A stretch of 64,000 bases of DNA, from NCBI RefSeq assembly GCF_006345805.1, contig NC_042997.1:130076001-130140000 (forward strand), given 5' to 3'. Below are positions 3,601-40,525 of the stretch, in pieces (within the stretch, counting starts at the first letter, position 1; each line of letters starts with the position of its first letter). The position numbers and the translations under genes are program-made. This DNA comes from Octopus sinensis. Lineage: Eukaryota. The notes under the pieces were generated by a model. It was not told the origin of the DNA, ran no database searches, and saw nothing but the letters and a program-made list of their open reading frames with translations.

Positions 3601-6600
3601 GTACAGAAAAAAAATTCCAAAATCATCAGTTTCCTGTGATACCAGCCAGTAATACATCTGAAATCAAATCTATCATACACTGGCTGAAACTACATAGTCC
3701 ATACATGAGCCAAAGTAAGCCTCTGCCCAATTGTTTGACCTGCTAGAAACAGCGACCAGATCCCACTCATATCATTCTCTACCATCTTAAAGAAGGAAAG
3801 ACACTTTGCATAATATATCCAAAGATGCATGCTATATGAAAAAAGTGATCATAGCAGGAACATCTTTGATCATAGGTATGGTGGATCACGACTAACCTAG
3901 GGCTAAACAAACTATTATGGTAGCTATGTTCACTGTTAGAAAACACAAGTAACTGGACAATAAAGTAAACTGAATATATTCTATTTACCAAACTAGGTAC
4001 TTTATTTAAGCAGATCTATGGTGTATTTGTGAAGCCCTCCCAAATATATGAATAGCTGCTTGGACCTAAATGTAGGAATAAAATGTTGGGTGGGTTTTCT
4101 TCCTTAAAGAAACAGGGAACACAATATCAATACCTATTAATACCAAGGAGGGAAATGCTTAGCAGATGAGTTAGTTTAAATTCCTCACTCTCTTAGTCTG
4201 ACTATATACTCAAAAATAAAATATTGATAAAAAGGGTTTCTTTATCAGGGCTGACCCGGAACTAAACAATGGCTTATTGTCTATCTTTACATTGGTGAGT
4301 TGCATAGCTTATAAGGTTACAACTGAATACTATCTTCATATAGTCCACCTGGGGCAAGCCAGCTTGGTGAATATCATCAATCTTCAAGTAATAACCACAG
4401 GAACTGAACTCATCATCAACCCTCGGACATTACTGTCTTGAATCTGTAGATTCACAGGGATGGTTAACTGGTTTCCATAATATATAAGCAACTGAGACCA
4501 TAACATCCCCCCTCAATGGAATGCCTGTCCATGGCAGGGTTACATGTTTACAGCTGAGTGAATTAGAGCAACATAAATATTTTGCCCAAGAACACAATGC
4601 ACGACCTGGTCCAGAAACTGAAACCACAATTTTGCTATCCTGAGTATAACATCCTAACCACTAGGCCATGTGCCAGCACTCATTGAATTCAACACTACAA
4701 ATAGACAAAACACTTATTTTTAGTGCAGTAACCTTTTACAGTAAGGCAGACTGCACTGAGTTATCTGAGAGTGAAACAGTGTTGCCAAAGATACAGTACA
4801 GTGGTTGATTGTTGGTTACCTTATTGATTCAGCCTTGCAACTGTGACAGAGTAGAACACTTCATAAGAGTCCTCACTAACCAGCTCCTTACCTCTTTTTC
4901 TTGAACTCAAATTACAGTGGATGCAACTGTCCTCCATCCCTTCAGGGTCAATAAAATTAATACTAATATATCAGAGGCAAACTATAAGGAACTATACACT
5001 ACCTTTATCTTTAGTGAAGATTACAGTATTGTTAATCTCAATCTTTAGAATAATCAGCTCAAAGTTTTTCAAAAATGGTGCTATTTTCTATTTCCATATT
5101 CCTTTGACAATATTTTGGGTAAATATCCATGTTGGGCATTTCTATTTCACACTCTGTAAATATAAAGTATTGAACAACAATGATTATCATTGAGACACTG
5201 TGAGGAAGCAGTGACTGGACTCCAGAATATTCAATGATACAATATCTATTTACCTGATATGACAGTCAACTTAACCAAAGTAACTCTTGCCAAGTTCAAG
5301 AGAGTGCTTCTAAAAGCTGTAACTATAGTAAGTCTGAAATAGAGTATAAATTAATAAAATACTCATCAAATATAAAATGCGTCTACTGCTTGTATGGAAC
5401 TACACTTCTCTATAGTACATTTGTTATGAACTTTCTCATTGATTTCCACAAAGGAATATTCCAGTTGCTTAACTAATAGAACCACCTATCTATTATAGGG
5501 TATTGCTTATAAGCTTGTAAAAAATGAACTGTAGACAAGGACTTTTACTGCAGACTAGTTATAGAACTAGATGGTAGAAAAGGCACTTCTGGTGAGGTAG
5601 GTAACAAGACCTGGGCGGTAGGGGTGGGTGAATCACTCTTTTTCACATTTGTAAATGTTTGACATGCAATAAACAACAGCTCAATAACTGTCATTATTTT
5701 ATGTGTAATTTAACTAAAGCTATGTTATTGTATAATAGTGCTAGTAACTAAGTATTCCAGGGACACTTGTACATTTAGCATAATTCTCAGGTCAAATCAG
5801 CATACTATATGTAACACTGAGCCTTGGAATCACACACATTGTCCATTTGACAAGCTTCTACAAAATTTCCCCCTCTATAATTTTACTGACAAGATTTTAG
5901 TCAATCCAAGACGACGGAAGAAGTTATTAGCTCAAGTTGCAATAAAGTGGAATCAAACTTAGAACCTTGTGATTGTGAAGCAAACTTCTTAACCACACAG
6001 ATATGTATTGACAGCTAGGTAGAATGGAACTGCGAGAATTACATTTTGGTGATGTAGGTGACGAAATGTAAATATATTAACCTTTCAATCAGACACTTTG
6101 CCACAAAGAAAATATAACATAACAAATTTAATGTCTAAATTAGAAGTCATTAATGATATTTAGACAGGGGACTAAATTTTTATTTTGTGTTACAAATCAT
6201 TTGAATGTTATCTGAAGTAAAATAGATATTTTGTTTAGTTCAGTAACATTTCACAGGCATAACACATGGCTGTCAGCAATATCCTTTCTTCTTCACAGAG
6301 GTAACTCAAACATGGATACTAAAACATCCTTATATCTTTAAAGTATAATGTTCTAAAAACTTCACTGTTAGATTTCAAAACAACAGAACAACCAATGAAA
6401 TTTTACAAGCCATTTTATTTATAATTAAAAAAAGAAAGCAATTTCTTTTTTTTTTCTTTTCTTCAAGACAATTTCAAAATACAAAGTTTTTTCAGAGTTA
6501 TTCCACTGGTCAAGGTGGAAATAAAAAGTCAAAAAAGATTTAAAAAATGTCAAATAAAGCTCACATCATTTATATGAAAACAAAATTGTGAGAAAGCTAA

Positions 6601-15609: not shown

Positions 15610-16665
15610 CCTATAAATTATTTACTTTACTCATCAAGTTATAACAAAAGCAACCTAGCATTCAAAGCAGAAGCCACCATGTTGCACCGTTTGAAGTCAC
15701 CTTTCTATCAGTTCTTTAATTCTATGTTCATACCAGTTCTTGTCCTTTGAGGTGAAGAACTCTTTCACTGAAGCTTCCACCCTCTCTTTGTTGATAAAGT
15801 GTTGTGAGAGCAGGAAGTGAACCATGGATAAGAACAAGTAATAATTTGAGGAAGATGTTTTTCCACAATCTTAACATGCATAAGTAGTGGTTAAGCAAAG
15901 GCCAGCTTCTGGAACCTGTTACCAAACATGGGCATTTCAAAGAGATGTTCTACGTCTGGTGGAATTATGAGGGGATAATTCACTGTGAGTTTGTTCCAGA
16001 TGGTTGAACCATCAATGCCAACCAGTACTCCAAACAGCTGGAATAGATGTATGTCATTGTGTGGCAAAAATACCCCGCATTGGTTAACAAAAACCAAGCT
16101 CTTCTACAGCAAGAGAATGCAAGACCTCATAATGCTCAAACGCCAAAGACTTGAGGGAATAGAACTGATGGCACACCCAGCATATTGTCCAGACCTAATT
16201 CCCTTGGATTATTACTTGTTCCAATATGTGGCTCACTTCCTATGCTCACAACACTTCATCAACCAAGAGGACCTGAAAGCTTCAATGAAGGAACTCTTCA
16301 CCTTGAAGGACAAGAACTGATATAATAATAATAATAATGAAATTATTGTATACAGTGCTCAGGTGCACCACAACTTGTCTGGAAAGTGAACAGTGTATGA
16401 GTCAGATACATGCTTGTGTGTGCATGGAGGGGACAAAATCAGGTGTAGCGTTGGCGAATCTCAGGAAGCATGGAAGTTTTGAAGGATGCAATGCTCCGAC
16501 AACTAACAACTGGTGCCGGCAGTTTATTCCATACTTCAGCAACTCTTAACATGCAAAAATGTTTCCTAAGGTCATGGGAGCTGTGCTGTTTTCTGTTATA
16601 ACTTGTCAAATAAAGCTAATAAGTTACCAAAATATTGCAAAACTTTTGAGCACAATAAATCATTC
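15610..16665 (+). mobile_element. Degenerate mariner element, interrupted by a LINE 3' fragment, with an inverted copy of its 3' end at about 15640-15790
   Basis: VWWNYEGIIHCEF and MAHPAYCPDLIPLDYYLF (mariner HPPYSPDLAPSDY motif); minus strand 15650-15790 reads VEASVKEFFTSKDKNWYEHRIKEL. Confidence 0.8.
16322..16595 (-). mobile_element. 5'-truncated 3' end of a related CR1/L2-group LINE
   Basis: Encodes RKQHSSHDLRKHFCMLRVAEVWNKLP...PEIRQRYT*, with the same terminal stem-loop and (ATT)n tail as 17229-20845. Confidence 0.88.
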
Positions 16666-17313
16666 TTTAACTATCAACATTTGAAAGTGAACTATTGCTC
16701 TAATCAGTCTCCAGTCAGTGAAGTATTTATTAGGTGATATGAATAATCATCACCTTTGCTTTCATGTCTGTTTTCTTATACTAGCTTAAGTTGAATAGGA
16801 TTTTTAGAGGTAGCTGGATCCCCTTCCTAATAGTAGCCATTTTAAATGCCTCTTATAATATGCAGGAATACAGTGTACCTAATCTAAAAATGGAGGCACA
16901 CACATTTTTTTTCTCTTCAGTATTTGGATCAAAGACAGGATATATTTCAAGCTGCTTCTGTTGTTATCACCACTGGACATCATTGATCCAAGTTAGTCCT
17001 ACTTCAACCAATGTATGTGACCAAGAATATTGTTTGAATGTAAAGGTCAATGTTTTGAGCAATAGTCACTTTATCTTTATTGTGGGATACACTATTCAAA
17101 AATATACGATCATTTCAATAATTCTTCATTTACATCATCATGAAAAATGGACATTAAATGATGATGAGAGGAGGATTAACTTCCTGTATGACAAGGTACT
17201 GCACTGGTCTTGAAATGCATGATATCACAATAATAATAATAATAATAATAATTGTGTACAGTGCTCAGGTGCACTACAACTCATCTAAAGTGTATATATA
17301 ATCAGGTGTAGTT

Positions 17314-20067
17314 TCAACGGATTTCGGGAAGCATGAGGGCCTTAAAGGATGCAGTGTCATGGCAGTCAACAACTGATGCAGGCAGTTTATTCCACGCTTC
17401 AGCAACCCTGAGCGTGAAAAAATGTTTCCGAAAGTCATGGGAGCTGTGCTGTTTTCTGACTTTGTAGGCATGTCCATGTGTGTTAGACACATGGAGATCA
17501 AAAAGGTGTTCAGTGTTGTTGTTGGTGAGGTGGTTGATAACCTTGTGGGTGTTTACCAAGTCTGTCGCCAGACGCCGGAGCTTCAGTGAATCCATGCCCA
17601 GGGAAACAAGGCGCTCAGAATATGGTAGGTGTCTGATGGAGGGTATGCGTATGGTTGCACGTCTCTGGACAGATTCCAGGAGGTCAATGTTCTGAGCAAG
17701 ATAGGGATTCCAAACTGATGATGCGAATTCCAAGTGTGGTCGTACCATAGCTGTATACAGTTTTAAATAGATGGCTGGAGAGCGGCTAACAAAAGTCTTG
17801 CTGAGTGATGCCAAGACACCCTCGGCCTTCTTGACAATTTTAGAGATATGCTTTGTCCAACGCAAATCACTGCTGACAGTGATGCCTAGGTCACGCTCAC
17901 AAGAGGATTTCTTGATATCAGTGTTGTGAAGGGAGTATGTGGACGCAGGGTTTTTTCTCCCAAAATGCATGGTGGTACACTTGTCCACAGCCAGTTTCAG
18001 TTGCCAGTCTGTGATCCATTGCTGCATTGTGTCTAGGTCTGATTGCAGGAAAGAGTTGTAGACATCAGGATCAGTCCTCTTGATTTCAAGGTACAGCTTG
18101 ATGTCGTCTGCATATTTCAATACTGTGGCATTCTTTAAATTGGCATCTATGTCATTAATGTATGCCACAAACAGGAGGGGACCAAGGACAGATCCCTGTG
18201 GCACACCCGATGACATCTCATATGGTGTAGAGTGCTGTCCTAGAACTGTGACTACCTCCTTTCGGCTGAGGATGAAGGATTTCAACCAGTTAAAAAGGTC
18301 ATCCCCCACACCCATTGCAGAGAGTTTCACCATAAGCCTTTTGTGTGGCACAGAGTTGAAAGCCTTAGCAAAGTCAAGGTAGACAACATCCACCCATGAG
18401 CCACTGTCAGTGATCTGAGTAATGTCCTCAAGGAACTCGACAAGCTGGTCACTGCAGCTGGAGTTAGGGACAAATCCATATTGTGAGGGTCGGATGAGAC
18501 TGTGAGAGCTCCAGAAGTTCCAGAGTGTTTCTCTGACACACGATTCCATCAGTTTTGCAATACAGCTAGTGAGATTGACTGGGCAATAGTTGACAGGTGA
18601 TGTGCGGTCACCCTTTTTGAACAGAGGAATGACACTGGCAGTTTTCCACTGCTCCGGAGTAGCACCATTGTTGAGACAGTACTGGAAGAAAATAGAAAGC
18701 TGGTGTAAAAGGAAGTGCCTGCCATGTTTGAGAAGCAGGTATGTAACTCCATCGAGACCAGGGGAGGCATAGTTGCGCTTATTTTGAAGGTGACGTCGCA
18801 GCATTGCAGGTGTAAATTCCATAGTTGTTATGGAGTTTGCTGTTAGTGATGGTGAAGATGGTACATTTTGACTTTCGACAGTGAATATGTTTGCATAGCA
18901 CTCGGCAATGAGTTCTGCGCATTCCTTGGGGTCGTCAGTGATCTGGTTCGTGTGAGGGTTGCGAAGAGGGCCCACTGGAGAGTGAGGTCTCTGCTTTGAA
19001 TGCACATATTTCCAGAAAACCTTGCTGTCAGGATTGGCTGCTATGCACTGTTCAAATTCAAGCACTGCATTTTTTGTCACTTGCTTGAGATGGTTGGAGG
19101 ATTTATTCCGCTTCTTCCTGTTGGTGTCTGATTTATGCAACTTGTATTCCTGTTCAGCAGTCCGACGTTCCTTCCTGGCAAGTCGGACCGCTGAAGTTTC
19201 CCAAATTGCCCTTTTGGGGCGGTTCTTCTTTTTTTGTTTACATGGCACTGATGCTGCACATGCTGCCCATATTGAGTCCAGGATACTCTGGAGTATAGTA
19301 TTCACATCTCCAGAGTTGTAGAATTCACGCCAGTTTGGGTGCTGTAGTTCAGTGTGGTACAGGTTCCAATCTGCTCTCTTCCAATCGAAGGAAGCAGATT
19401 GGAGATGGTTCAGGTGTTTGTTGCCCGCAAGAGCCAGATTGGCGATGATCATAGCATGATCAGAGTCACCTAGAGGTTCCTCCGTAGTGCAATTGATAAC
19501 CGCTTCAGGAGTTGTGGTGAAGAGCAGGTCCAAGGTGTTGTCGCCTCTTGTTGGAGAGGTGACTACTTGTGACCAGTTTGAGTCCAGCACAAGCTCAACA
19601 AAATCGTTTGCACTCTGTGGCCAACGGAAGGTTTCCCAATCAATCTCAGGATGATTGAAATCGCCTGCAATAAACACATAAGTGGCTGTTTTCCTGGCTG
19701 CAGCTCGGAGGATGTTGCAAAGCTGTGTGTCCTGATGGTAATTTGGGGGACGATAAACAACGCCAAGCAGGAGTGTTGACATGGTCATACGTACGTCACA
19801 GAAAAAAACTTCTTCTTGTGATTCGTTCAAATCGGCACAAGGAATTACCAAAAAATTTGAACGAACGTAGACCATCACACCACCACCACGGCGGTTAGTG
19901 CGGTCCTTACGGAAGAGGTTGTACCCCGTGATGTTGAAAACCCCATCACAGAGTAAGGAATGCGCCCATGTTTCCGTGACAGTGATGAAGTCAGGGTCAA
20001 CACTTCTGACGTAGGCGTTGAACAAATGTATTTTGTTGCATAAACTGCGAGCATTTAAGGACAACAA
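17314..20067 (-). CDS. LINE ORF2: apurinic endonuclease + reverse transcriptase, no initiating AUG (frame stays open upstream into the ORF1 end)
   Basis: APE motifs VTETW, VYRPP, GDFNHP, LDLLF, SDH; RT motifs YLDFAKAF, QGSVLGPLLF, YADD, RDLGI; CR1/L2-type C-terminus FFTLRVAEAWNKLP. Confidence 0.95.
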   Translation of the reverse strand: MLSLNARSLCNKIHLFNAYVRSVDPDFITVTETWAHSLLCDGVFNITGYNLFRKDRTNRRGGGVMVYVRSNFLVIPCADLNESQEEVFFCDVRMTMSTLLLGVVYRPPNYHQDTQLCNILRAAARKTATYVFIAGDFNHPEIDWETFRWPQSANDFVELVLDSNWSQVVTSPTRGDNTLDLLFTTTPEAVINCTTEEPLGDSDHAMIIANLALAGNKHLNHLQSASFDWKRADWNLYHTELQHPNWREFYNSGDVNTILQSILDSIWAACAASVPCKQKKKNRPKRAIWETSAVRLARKERRTAEQEYKLHKSDTNRKKRNKSSNHLKQVTKNAVLEFEQCIAANPDSKVFWKYVHSKQRPHSPVGPLRNPHTNQITDDPKECAELIAECYANIFTVESQNVPSSPSLTANSITTMEFTPAMLRRHLQNKRNYASPGLDGVTYLLLKHGRHFLLHQLSIFFQYCLNNGATPEQWKTASVIPLFKKGDRTSPVNYCPVNLTSCIAKLMESCVRETLWNFWSSHSLIRPSQYGFVPNSSCSDQLVEFLEDITQITDSGSWVDVVYLDFAKAFNSVPHKRLMVKLSAMGVGDDLFNWLKSFILSRKEVVTVLGQHSTPYEMSSGVPQGSVLGPLLFVAYINDIDANLKNATVLKYADDIKLYLEIKRTDPDVYNSFLQSDLDTMQQWITDWQLKLAVDKCTTMHFGRKNPASTYSLHNTDIKKSSCERDLGITVSSDLRWTKHISKIVKKAEGVLASLSKTFVSRSPAIYLKLYTAMVRPHLEFASSVWNPYLAQNIDLLESVQRRATIRIPSIRHLPYSERLVSLGMDSLKLRRLATDLVNTHKVINHLTNNNTEHLFDLHVSNTHGHAYKVRKQHSSHDFRKHFFTLRVAEAWNKLPASVVDCHDTASFKALMLPEIR

Positions 20068-20133
20068 TTTGTACCCTGCTCGCAGTTTATGATGGTGTGT
20101 GGAGGATGGCAGATTGTCCTGGCTTAGTTTCCC
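20039..20133 (-). promoter_or_regulatory. Putative -1 programmed ribosomal frameshift signal (G GGA AAC + 6 nt + H-type pseudoknot)
   Basis: Heptamer 20133-20127 directly before the ORF1 TAA; the -1 frame is continuous into ORF2; 7-bp and 15-bp stems are interleaved. Confidence 0.78.
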
Positions 20134-20831
20134 TGAGTTGCTGTAGTCTTTTTAGTTATTGTGGGTAGAGAGCACTCAGACCAGCTGGTATCTCTCTTCC
20201 ACGTTTCATCAGTCTTGACAAATCTCCAGATTTGTCCATCTTCCCGAAGACTGAAGCTTTCCTGTAGAGCTGAGTTCCTATTCAGGGAAGCCGCTACACG
20301 TAGCTTCGGACGTAGATCGGACGGTAAGCCTGGGCGTGTTCGGAAGGTGGTCCGATTTTCACGCCCAGCTTTAACTGAGGCCAGATGGTAAGAGGTTGCC
20401 TCAGTGTGGTCCGAAAAAGACAGCTTGATGAGCCTAGGTTTTGGGCCAGGTTGTCCAAGGCGGATAGCACCCGTTGGGGGAACGCAGCCTAGGTCTTTGG
20501 CTGAGTTGGCAGCAAATGCCTGAAGATCAGCCATGTCTTCAGGCACCCCAATGGCAATGACTTCATGGGTAGCAGAATCCGCGGTCTTAGATGCGACAAG
20601 AGGTACAGGTACAGGGAGGTTCTTTAGCAGAGCATTCCGATAAGACCCCTCATTGTGGAGTCCAACCTGAATGGTTGCTTTTATTCCTGCTACTTCCCCT
20701 CTTAAAGCACAGATCGATTGTTGCAGTTCTGCAAGAACCGCACTGGTCAATTGGTGTTGTTGTTGTTGCTGCTGCTGCTCTGGTTGTGGTTGATTTTGTA
20801 CAAGAATTGTACTAACTTTGTTTACATTCAT
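20124..20831 (-). CDS. LINE ORF1: polyQ/coiled-coil followed by an L1-ORF1p-like RRM/CTD region
   Basis: VIAIGVPE...IRLG...PRLIKLSF pattern typical of RRM-type LINE ORF1; the N-terminus may be truncated or partly read from flank. Confidence 0.8.
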   Translation of the reverse strand: MNVNKVSTILVQNQPQPEQQQQQQQHQLTSAVLAELQQSICALRGEVAGIKATIQVGLHNEGSYRNALLKNLPVPVPLVASKTADSATHEVIAIGVPEDMADLQAFAANSAKDLGCVPPTGAIRLGQPGPKPRLIKLSFSDHTEATSYHLASVKAGRENRTTFRTRPGLPSDLRPKLRVAASLNRNSALQESFSLREDGQIWRFVKTDETWKRDTSWSECSLPTITKKTTATQGN

Positions 20832-20965
20832 TGTTTACATTCATTTTAAAGGAAGTGAGGAACCCTCTAATGTAAGGGAAAACCTAAGTCTTCTATCATT
20901 CATTTCTGTTTTGTAACATTCCTTGTACTTTTGTTGTTTTTTATTATTTGTATTTGCTTTTTGTT

Positions 20966-20988
20966 TGATATATATGTGTGTGTATATA

Positions 20989-21053
<65 letters not shown>
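20966..21053. repeat. (TA)n microsatellite just upstream of the WDR59 exon 5 acceptor
   Basis: Long near-perfect TA run. Confidence 0.95.
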
Positions 21054-40356: not shown

Positions 40357-40525
40357 AATAATAATAATAATGAAATTATTGTATACAGTGCTCAGGTGCA
40401 CCACAACTTGTCAAAAGTGCATATAAAGCATATGCAGTAATGTACAAATGTCTGGGAAGTGAACAGTGTATGAGTCAGATACATGCTTGCATGTGTATGG
40501 AGGGGAGGAAATCAGATGTAATGTT
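40357..40525 (-). mobile_element. 3' UTR fragment of the same LINE group
   Basis: Shares tacagtgctcaggtgcaccacaac and the (ATT)n tail with 16322-16595. Confidence 0.8.

Follow-up and report, generated by a model that had tools for sequence, protein, structure and literature searches.

A conserved slippery heptamer as the probable -1 frameshift site between ORF1 and ORF2 in a CR1-like LINE family from octopus

The window analysed here is a stretch of 64,000 nucleotides (nt) from Octopus sinensis (NCBI RefSeq assembly GCF_006345805.1, contig NC_042997.1, positions 130,076,001 to 130,140,000), which carries on its minus strand a truncated copy of a CR1-like long interspersed nuclear element (LINE). 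The first open reading frame (ORF) of this element, ORF1, ends in the heptamer G GGA AAC and a stop codon, and the second, ORF2, lies in the -1 frame. Judging from this copy and its relatives, the junction is likely to be the programmed -1 frameshift site of a whole CR1-like LINE family, operating without a conserved 3' pseudoknot or hairpin. The features of the junction, in window coordinates, are the following.

20127..20133, minus strand: slippery heptamer, G GGA AAC, read by ORF1 in the phase X XXY YYZ and proposed as the -1 shift site
20124..20126, minus strand: ORF1 stop codon TAA, abutting the heptamer
20068..20127, minus strand: 20-codon transframe linker in the -1 frame (LSQDNLPSSTHHHKLRAGYK), leading from the shift site to the endonuclease
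20124..20831, minus strand: ORF1 remnant, a mechanical ORF of 235 amino acids (aa), of which only 20799-20124 derives from the element
17314..20067, minus strand: ORF2, in the -1 frame and AUG-less, with its stop at 17316-17314

Read on the minus strand, the 3' end of ORF1 is ...ACA GCA ACT CAG GGA AAC TAA. The -1 frame opens at 20151, six codons upstream of the heptamer and without an ATG there, and stays open to 17317, a run of 939 codons that ends in the stop at 17316-17314; its translation, GKL SQDNLPSSTHHHKLRAGYK, leads into LLSLNARSL, with which the apurinic/apyrimidinic (AP) endonuclease begins. After a slip, the linker would be L S Q D N L P S S T H H H K L R A G Y K. In the ORF2 frame, the earliest Met comes 86 codons past the heptamer, which places it some 60-64 aa inside the endonuclease, beyond the latter's conserved N (LNARSL) and E (TETW) motifs. 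ORF2 has no usable AUG of its own. On these three points (the heptamer abutting the stop, the 20-codon open stretch in the -1 frame and the position of the first Met, put at about 64 aa), the original prediction, made from the window sequence, is borne out.

The strongest evidence comes from the conservation of the heptamer. We compared the junction of the window with those of nine further loci, which together represent six lineages. Three of these loci are from Octopus vulgaris, L001 with 95% DNA identity to the window LINE and L005 and L006 with 78%; the others lie on environmental contigs (L002, 78%; L003 and L004, 64%; L029, L033 and L034). The ORF1 proteins are 89% identical to that of the window in the lineage of L001 and 37-57% identical in the divergent lineages. 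Nevertheless, in-phase GGGAAAC followed immediately by a stop codon was found in all ten loci, always with ORF2 in the -1 frame, so the heptamer and frame that the original prediction proposed to look for in family copies were kept throughout. The position of the stop is fixed, its identity varies (TAA, TAG or TGA), and the -1 frame begins 2-14 codons upstream. The alignment shows the heptamer and the first bases of the stop as an invariant island amid an otherwise variable ORF1 C-terminus, and the linker that follows is poorly conserved in sequence and ranges from 20 to 44 codons in length. No Met precedes the catalytic endonuclease motifs in four of the five major lineages. An ORF2 AUG in other copies had been named beforehand as evidence against frameshifting: none occurs from the ORF1 stop to the endonuclease in the octopus-type lineages and L033, and one is present in L003, L004 and L034 only, 23 codons downstream. 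A more distant relative, L028 (60% ORF2 identity), is uninformative on the junction, its contig beginning 35 nt before ORF2.

It is important to note that the invariance concerns codons and not merely amino acids. Among the 52 ORF1 columns that hold one degenerate amino acid in all six lineages, only four are also codon-invariant, and the heptamer supplies two of these four, GGA and AAC. Gly is invariant in three further columns, whose codons vary among GGA, GGT, GGC and GGG, and Asn in one further column, which uses AAT and AAC. The codon preceding the heptamer is CAG, GTG or TTG, encoding Q, V or L, and its third base is always G. Synonymous sites among these lineages are saturated. Selection at the protein level does not account for such a pattern and a slippery site does, which indicates that the heptamer is conserved as a nucleotide signal. 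Because it is invariant in ten loci despite ORF1 identities of 37-57% and saturated synonymous sites, we regard the heptamer as functional-looking beyond reasonable doubt.

In the same set of junctions, L033 combines, at 1536-1750, an ORF1 of L003 type, ending in GGGAAAC-TGA, with a longer linker and an endonuclease that starts with WITNIRGL and not LNARSLCNK. Two LINE lineages may have exchanged modules here at the frameshift junction.

The same motif can be followed at the protein level further afield. A profile search with five ORF1 proteins returned 150 distant homologues, 132 of them of normal length. Of the latter, 79 carry 'GN' within their last 16 residues, a feature of 3% of 16-residue windows in the background. 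Mostly SGN or QGN, the motif aligns past a linker of variable length that follows a conserved W.RD.DW domain; the residue before GN has a G-ending codon in 77 of 78 cases, and the stop comes 0-3 codons after GN in 52 of the 79, with an overall spread of 0-14 unconserved residues. Exceptions to GN are PKN, which fits A AAA AAC, and GK, which fits G GGA AAA or AAG. One distant member with a DNA record, L064, reads tcG GGA AAC ttc TAA and has an ATG-less ORF2 in the -1 frame.

Could the motif simply reflect a requirement of the ORF1 protein (ORF1p) for a C-terminal Gly-Asn, or some other function of the nucleic acid, with the junction of the window being a decayed remnant? The conservation of GN as protein in many ORF1 homologues and the state of the window copy, which is dead and 5'-truncated, would agree with this. 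However, a need for Gly-Asn would single out neither GGA from the four Gly codons, nor AAC against AAT, nor G as the wobble base of a variable preceding codon; a motif that sits after a variable linker and is followed by 0-14 unconserved residues behaves as a nucleotide signal; and the exceptions, PKN and GK, still spell slippery heptamers. As for decay, the junction of the window is not decayed, because both of its ORFs are still open. We consider this explanation very improbable indeed.

The frameshift reading, which we prefer, would proceed as follows. With a ribosome at G GGA AAC, tRNA-Gly would occupy the peptidyl (P) site and tRNA-Asn the aminoacyl (A) site. A small fraction of ribosomes would slip one base back, re-pairing from GGA to GGG and from AAC to AAA, and would read CUA (Leu) next. 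The shifted ribosomes would then cross the 20-codon linker into the AUG-less ORF for endonuclease and reverse transcriptase (RT) and make a fusion of ORF1p and the ORF2 protein (ORF2p) reading ...T-Q-G-N-L-S-Q-D-N..., with the predicted transframe peptide ...TATQGNLSQDNLPSSTHHHK. The remaining ribosomes would stop at the codon abutting the heptamer and release ORF1p. The slippage itself we infer from the site, and its efficiency is presumably low, which would suit an enzyme needed far less than ORF1p. The abutting stop could help, slow termination giving the tRNAs in the P and exit (E) sites time to re-pair; the fixed position of the stop in the family of the window supports such a role. On mammalian ribosomes, G_GGA_AAC is among the most shift-prone heptamers (PMC5009743). 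Transcriptional slippage was rejected, GGGAAAC having no long homopolymer run.

An independent view of the junction was obtained from an unbiased sample. Prokaryotic genome bins were scanned with RT motifs only, the junction not being used, and from at least 375 stretches overall we took 80 eukaryotic CR1-like LINEs (L035-L114) with 27-42% ORF2 identity. Junctions were counted for loci whose upstream ORF was 120 aa or longer, a canonical in-phase heptamer being scored when it lay no more than 45 nt from the ORF1 stop. The counts by frame were as follows.

ORF2 in the -1 frame: 14 loci, heptamer in 7
ORF2 in the frame of ORF1 with one stop between: 11 loci, heptamer in 0
ORF2 in the +1 frame: 9 loci, heptamer in 2

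The background rate of such heptamers is 0.5% per in-phase position. In the seven -1 loci, they are U UUA AAC UAG (L036, L037 and L073), U UUU UUA (L038 and L114), G GGA AAC (L064) and A AAA AAC (L035). Of the two +1 cases, one (L076) belongs, like L080, to the U UUA AAC UAG family and is a frameshifted copy of it. A further locus, L065, has the non-canonical variant G GAA AAC UAA, again with ORF2 at -1. The sites lie at these positions of their loci.

L036, about 3635-3644
L080, about 3911-3920
L114, about 3950-3965
L038, about 478-492
L035, about 1069-1075
L065, about 1413-1422

Family-specific heptamers at one and the same place, and none where no shift is needed, form the pattern that would be expected of real recoding sites. 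In-phase heptamers in other metagenome loci, A AAA AAC in L008-L011 and C CCU UUA in L012 and L015, were not counted as evidence because they fall within the conserved ORF1 motifs SKNE.ADW and DLTPLER and may be kept for the sake of the protein. A scan of viral contigs with the ORF2 alignment yielded no relatives.

Families with an in-frame stop and no ORF2 AUG comprise L030 (stop at 1002-1004), L031 (1301-1303) and 11 loci derived from metagenome-assembled genomes (MAGs), namely L051, L053, L054, L056, L058, L061, L077, L092, L101, L106 and L111. Their stops stand in the contexts UGA-CUG, UGA-CUA, UGA-CAA, or UAG-GAY followed by ..UGUUUU, and their architecture would be of the stop-codon readthrough or reinitiation type.

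This last group bears on another explanation, namely that ORF2 is translated on its own, through termination-reinitiation or non-AUG initiation of the kind seen in human L1 and in SART1 with its UAAUG, the heptamer being irrelevant. The ORF1 stop is just about 20 codons upstream of the endonuclease, an in-frame AUG stands at the endonuclease start in the L003/L034 lineage, human L1 has an AUG-independent route, and the AUG-less families with in-frame stops could use either readthrough or reinitiation; all of this would suit a separate ORF2p. However, such a mechanism leaves unexplained the exact invariance of G GGA AAC, its phase and the constant -1 position of ORF2 across saturated synonymous sites, as well as the occurrence of other canonical heptamers at the same spot and of none in the in-frame-stop families; moreover, octopus-type lineages and L033 have no AUG on offer. 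Hence, we regard separate translation of ORF2 as quite improbable.

The original prediction went further than a heptamer and described a complete signal with an H-type pseudoknot, made of the following arms.

20114..20120, minus strand: 5' arm of stem 1 (S1), AGGACAA, 6 nt past the heptamer
20058..20064, minus strand: 3' arm of S1, UUGUCCU, in the loop of the hairpin formed by stem 2 (S2)
20077..20091, minus strand: 5' arm of S2, CAUAAACUGCGAGCA, beginning 35 nt past the heptamer
20039..20053, minus strand: 3' arm of S2, UGCUCGCAGUUUAUG, encoding the conserved endonuclease motif NARSLC

Both complementarities, the 6-nt spacer and the loops of 22, 12 and 4 nt are where they were said to be, and the pseudoknot topology, in which S2 encloses the 3' arm of S1 between its two arms and loop 3 has 4 nt, is present in the window. 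S2 is a perfect 15-bp stem worth -22.3 kcal/mol alone and -27.8 kcal/mol with an inner extension. The junction region folds at -29.8 kcal/mol (z = -5.2), and none of 200 shuffles was as stable. At that spacing, a 7-bp Watson-Crick match to the S2 loop like that of S1 arises in 0.5% of shuffles, or in 2.7% with G-U pairs admitted; for a post hoc observation, the excess over chance is modest. In the minimum free energy (MFE) fold, UUGUCCU pairs elsewhere, with GGG.ACAA, in a nested extension of S2 that is incompatible with S1. The extension is worth -5.5 kcal/mol, and the S1 duplex about -8 kcal/mol before any pseudoknot penalty.

Among the relatives, this structure fades quickly. The central G of the 5' arm of S1 (20118) is private to the window copy, the other octopus-type lineages having xGAACAA, and of the seven S1 positions two are mismatched in L001 and three in L002 and L029. 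S2 is a perfect stem only in the window/L001 sublineage, where L001 has one A.C mismatch at a CpG. L002, L029, L005 and L006 carry CUGAAAUCA where the window has CUGCGAGCA, and the comparison indicates that CUGAAAUCA is ancestral and the 5' arm of S2 derived in the window and L001. The junctions of these four loci fold at the level of shuffles (z from -0.4 to +0.9), and L003 folds differently (z = -2.5), into a hairpin not found in L034. Between the window and L002, there are six differences in the S2 arms, all towards perfect pairing, including a synonymous change of CUA to UUA in the coding arm. Such a bias suggests either selection for a hairpin of the sublineage or templated correction of a quasi-palindrome. 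Over seven sequences, the share of paired cells in S1 and S2 (72%) equals the shuffled mean (243/500), with no excess covariation (288/500), so that the covariation check suggested along with the pseudoknot gave no sign of it; RNAalifold on seven junctions found a consensus of only -3 kcal/mol, made of an unrelated weak helix. Rfam models over 17000-21000 gave sub-threshold chance matches only, among which the S2 hairpin scored E 0.6 against a plant microRNA model.

Should the pseudoknot then be taken as the stimulator of the family, with the 7-bp S1 beginning 6 nt downstream of the heptamer and pairing into the hairpin loop formed by the 15-bp S2? S1 has canonical spacing, both complementarities exist, S2 is far above chance and common to L001 bar the one mismatch, the six arm differences from L002, one of them synonymous, all favour pairing, and an S1-like match is rare in shuffles (0.5-2.7%). 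A long loop 1 and an interstem element are also known from the pseudoknot of Visna-Maedi virus (PMC5009743). Nevertheless, S1 relies on a G found only in the 5'-truncated window copy; there is neither covariation nor a consensus fold beyond -3 kcal/mol; z is near zero in L002, L029, L005 and L006, although L002 has an intact ORF1 of 405 aa and an ORF2 open to the end of its contig; the 3' arm of S1 is captured by a nested alternative of similar or better energy; and a loop 3 of 4 nt over a 7-bp stem is shorter than in classical examples. Without S1, all that is left is S2, which begins 35 nt from the heptamer and is too distant to be a standard stimulator on its own, since these act at 5-9 nt. 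The claim of a complete signal is not supported, and we consider the pseudoknot unlikely as the stimulator of the family. The S2 hairpin itself is genuine and new to the window/L001 sublineage; a role for it in ribosome collision was rejected because ribosomes in the 0 frame terminate before they reach S2.

Returning to the heptamer as a shift site without a conserved 3' structure, several observations speak against it or against parts of it. Considering nested folds only, structure 5-9 nt past the heptamer did not exceed shuffles in five of nine junctions (window, L001, L002, L029 and L006), L003 being marginal, and was likewise not found in six of seven other LINE families, the exception being L038, whose strong hairpin, 5 nt downstream, has -20.8 kcal/mol and was equalled in stability by 1 shuffle of 100. 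Because no conserved 3' stimulator was found, the efficiency may be just the basal level of the heptamer. The spread of the stop over 0-14 codons in the wider family weakens the idea that the stop assists. The L003/L034 lineage has an in-frame AUG right before the endonuclease (..LLM LNARSL), and the absence of an AUG alone does not prove frameshifting elsewhere, because human L1 reinitiates in an AUG-independent way. Finally, the 79 GN homologues are known from protein sequence only, L064 excepted.

Beside the nested folds, we observed G-rich runs 5-15 nt past the ORF1 stop in L064, L065, L036 and L080 (GGGGGAG, GCGGGGAG, GCAGGGGGG and GGCAGGGGGG). These four junctions are unrelated, and the family of the window lacks such runs, which might be a stimulatory element of another kind.

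Several known systems help to place the octopus LINE. The gag-pro junction of simian retrovirus 1 (SRV-1), PEG10, and the poleroviruses and enamoviruses, such as beet western yellows virus (BWYV) and pea enation mosaic virus (PEMV), use the identical G GGA AAC in the same phase and share the logic by which the structural protein is the default product and the polymerase fusion comes from a minority of ribosomes. There, the signal depends on a compact H-type pseudoknot, 5-8 nt downstream, whereas in the octopus LINE no conserved 3' structure was found and the 0-frame stop abuts the heptamer. In this last respect, the sites of luteoviruses and dianthoviruses are closer. Barley yellow dwarf virus (BYDV; G GGU UUU UAG) as well as red clover necrotic mosaic virus (RCNMV; G GAU UUU UAG) have the shift heptamer directly before the 0-frame stop, and the relative L065 has a GGA-type counterpart in G GAA AAC UAA. 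These viruses differ in that a bulged stem-loop, 6 nt downstream, base-pairs over a distance of kilobases with another loop (PMC5009743); our comparison of the octopus LINE covers local sequence only.

Among non-LTR elements (those without long terminal repeats, LTRs), the Dictyostelium LINEs TRE5-A and TRE3-A are the nearest precedent, their ORF2 being stated to need a -1 frameshift (PMC5911963). They belong to another LINE clade and another host, and that review gives neither a heptamer nor a conservation analysis for them. The general view, adopted in the original prediction, that LINE ORF2s are made as separate proteins is therefore not universal. It does describe human L1, with AUG-independent termination-reinitiation, and SART1 of Bombyx, with UAAUG stop-start coupling, both of which yield a separate ORF2p. 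The octopus LINE resembles these two in its bicistronic RNA and L1-like ORF1p (the fold of the window protein matches 2ykp), whereas its anatomy predicts an ORF1p-ORF2p fusion.

Polymerase fusion through a -1 shift at X XXY YYZ is classical for retroviruses and LTR elements, and overlapping -1 ORFs were noted early in insect elements such as jockey, F and R1. The split of retroviral and LTR Gag-Pol between frameshifting and readthrough is mirrored by related LINE families, some of which have a -1 heptamer and others an in-frame stop (UGA-CUR, UAG-GAY) ahead of an AUG-less ORF2. Unlike those elements, the octopus LINE has no protease to cut the fusion and no capsid, and it uses target-primed reverse transcription. 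In a large review of recoding, non-LTR elements are mentioned solely for HeT-A and TART, and a full-text literature search, whose coverage did not extend to the text of published work on octopus LINEs, found no description of a conserved slippery heptamer for a CR1-like or other LINE, or for octopus. The principle of -1 frameshifting to a polymerase fusion is already known; new to the searchable literature is the conserved heptamer in a LINE.

The fusion of ORF1, endonuclease and RT in the manner of Gag-Pol is the best reading because G GGA AAC is conserved and correctly phased. Its proposed length of about 1170 aa holds only for the truncated copy; in intact relatives, the predicted fusion ranges from about 1200 aa (L003: 264 + 939) to about 1340 aa (L002: 405 + about 937). 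A bolder generalization seems to us quite possible, and we offer it tentatively: a large group of LINEs in many animals, with an ORF1 resembling that of L1 and a CR1-like ORF2, would never make free ORF2p and would have its enzyme only as a fusion. The logic of Gag-Pol would then be general and overlooked in these elements, and the stop codon, not a pseudoknot, would be the pausing element.

LINE biology is dominated by the L1 model, with separate ORF1p and ORF2p and an unusual reinitiation for the latter. If the frameshift reading is true, LINEs of this kind set the ratio of ORF1p to ORF2p by recoding, as retroviruses do, and the enzyme is physically tethered to an RNA-binding chaperone, which would provide a built-in explanation of cis-preference. 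For frameshifting research, the family would offer a natural set of eukaryotic sites apparently without a conserved 3' structure and with a stop abutting the heptamer. Annotation pipelines split such elements into ORF1 and an ORF2 with an invented start, and recognition of the site would lead to correct protein models for LINEs of octopus and other invertebrates. The broader pattern among wider ORF1 homologues and related LINE families is part of the interest for specialists.

The remaining features of the window copy are these.

17229..20799, minus strand: 5'-truncated CR1-like LINE copy with a partial ORF1, complete ORF2, 3' untranslated region (UTR) and simple-repeat tail
about 20061-19456, minus strand: AP-endonuclease domain of ORF2
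about 18609-17926, minus strand: reverse transcriptase domain of ORF2
17229..17313, minus strand: 3' UTR of about 60 nt, then an (ATT)n tail at about 17253-17229

The element is a LINE, since ORF2 matches Exo_endo_phos (E 1e-13) and RVT_1 (E 9e-34) in Pfam and the copy ends in the (ATT)n tail. It has the traits of the group, namely an endonuclease followed by RT, a 5' truncation (at 20799), a simple-repeat 3' tail and 3'-end fragments elsewhere. Its closest relatives are Octopus vulgaris sequences: identity to L001 runs from 20799 to about 17232, and ORF1 is 89% identical to P0001. Outside cephalopods, the best named ORF2 matches are bird CR1-type proteins with about 31% identity, and it is from these matches, not from a formal phylogeny, that we take the label CR1-like. 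A Pfam search with ORF1 gave no match. The predicted structure of ORF1p (predicted local distance difference test, pLDDT, 71) has as its best Protein Data Bank match the human LINE-1 ORF1p trimer 2ykp (E 4e-5), and the model resembles L1 ORF1p in having a coiled coil, an RNA recognition motif (RRM) and a C-terminal domain.

Homology to full-length relatives begins at 20799, within a poly-Q stretch of ORF1. In the full-length relatives (L001, L002, L006, P0002 and P0039), ORF1 has a Cys/His-rich N-terminal extension, to which nothing matches anywhere in the window. A label of PHD finger for this extension was dropped, as Pfam recognises none on the long ORF1 forms. The window copy has lost the N-terminal part of ORF1; therefore, the ATG at 20831 belongs to the flanking DNA and this copy, being 5'-truncated, is non-autonomous and dead. 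The identification of the 235-aa ORF as a LINE ORF1 consequently stands as to its homology with L1-like ORF1, and fails as to its extent, the ORF being truncated and its start lying in flanking DNA. This apparent start codon sits within a direct duplication, atgaatgtaaaca/atgaatgtaaaca, at 20799-20845 on the minus strand. An exact look-up of the window ORF1 protein found no record. The sister copy of Octopus vulgaris, L001, is also dead, because its ORF1 has an in-frame TAA in a tandemly expanded Q-rich repeat (NQPQPEQQQQ..., 4772-4960).

Within the window, there are no other copies across the junction, only 3'-end fragments. These short fragments, at 16437-16595, 16322-16375 and 40357-40425, match the 3' end of ORF2 plus the 3' UTR with 79-91% identity and are probably strongly 5'-truncated copies or a short interspersed nuclear element (SINE) with a LINE tail. 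A long (TA)n microsatellite lies immediately upstream of the truncated LINE, at about 20975-21050. The segment 20969-21076 is another repeat family, because it recurs in Octopus vulgaris L001 (13742-13816) and L006 (16584-16684).

The scan of genome bins also disclosed that animal-type CR1-like ORF2 is present, in at least 375 stretches, in bins labelled bacterial and archaeal. The MAG labels affected include Sedimenticola, Ca. Thiodiazotropha, Metamycoplasmataceae, Poribacteria and Nitrososphaeraceae, and these LINE stretches are host or eukaryotic DNA that has been mis-binned. Back in the window, an ORF on the plus strand at 15985-16320, containing ...HPAYCPDLIPLDYYLF..., is a candidate for what we take to be the C-terminal part of a transposase of mariner/Tc1 type.

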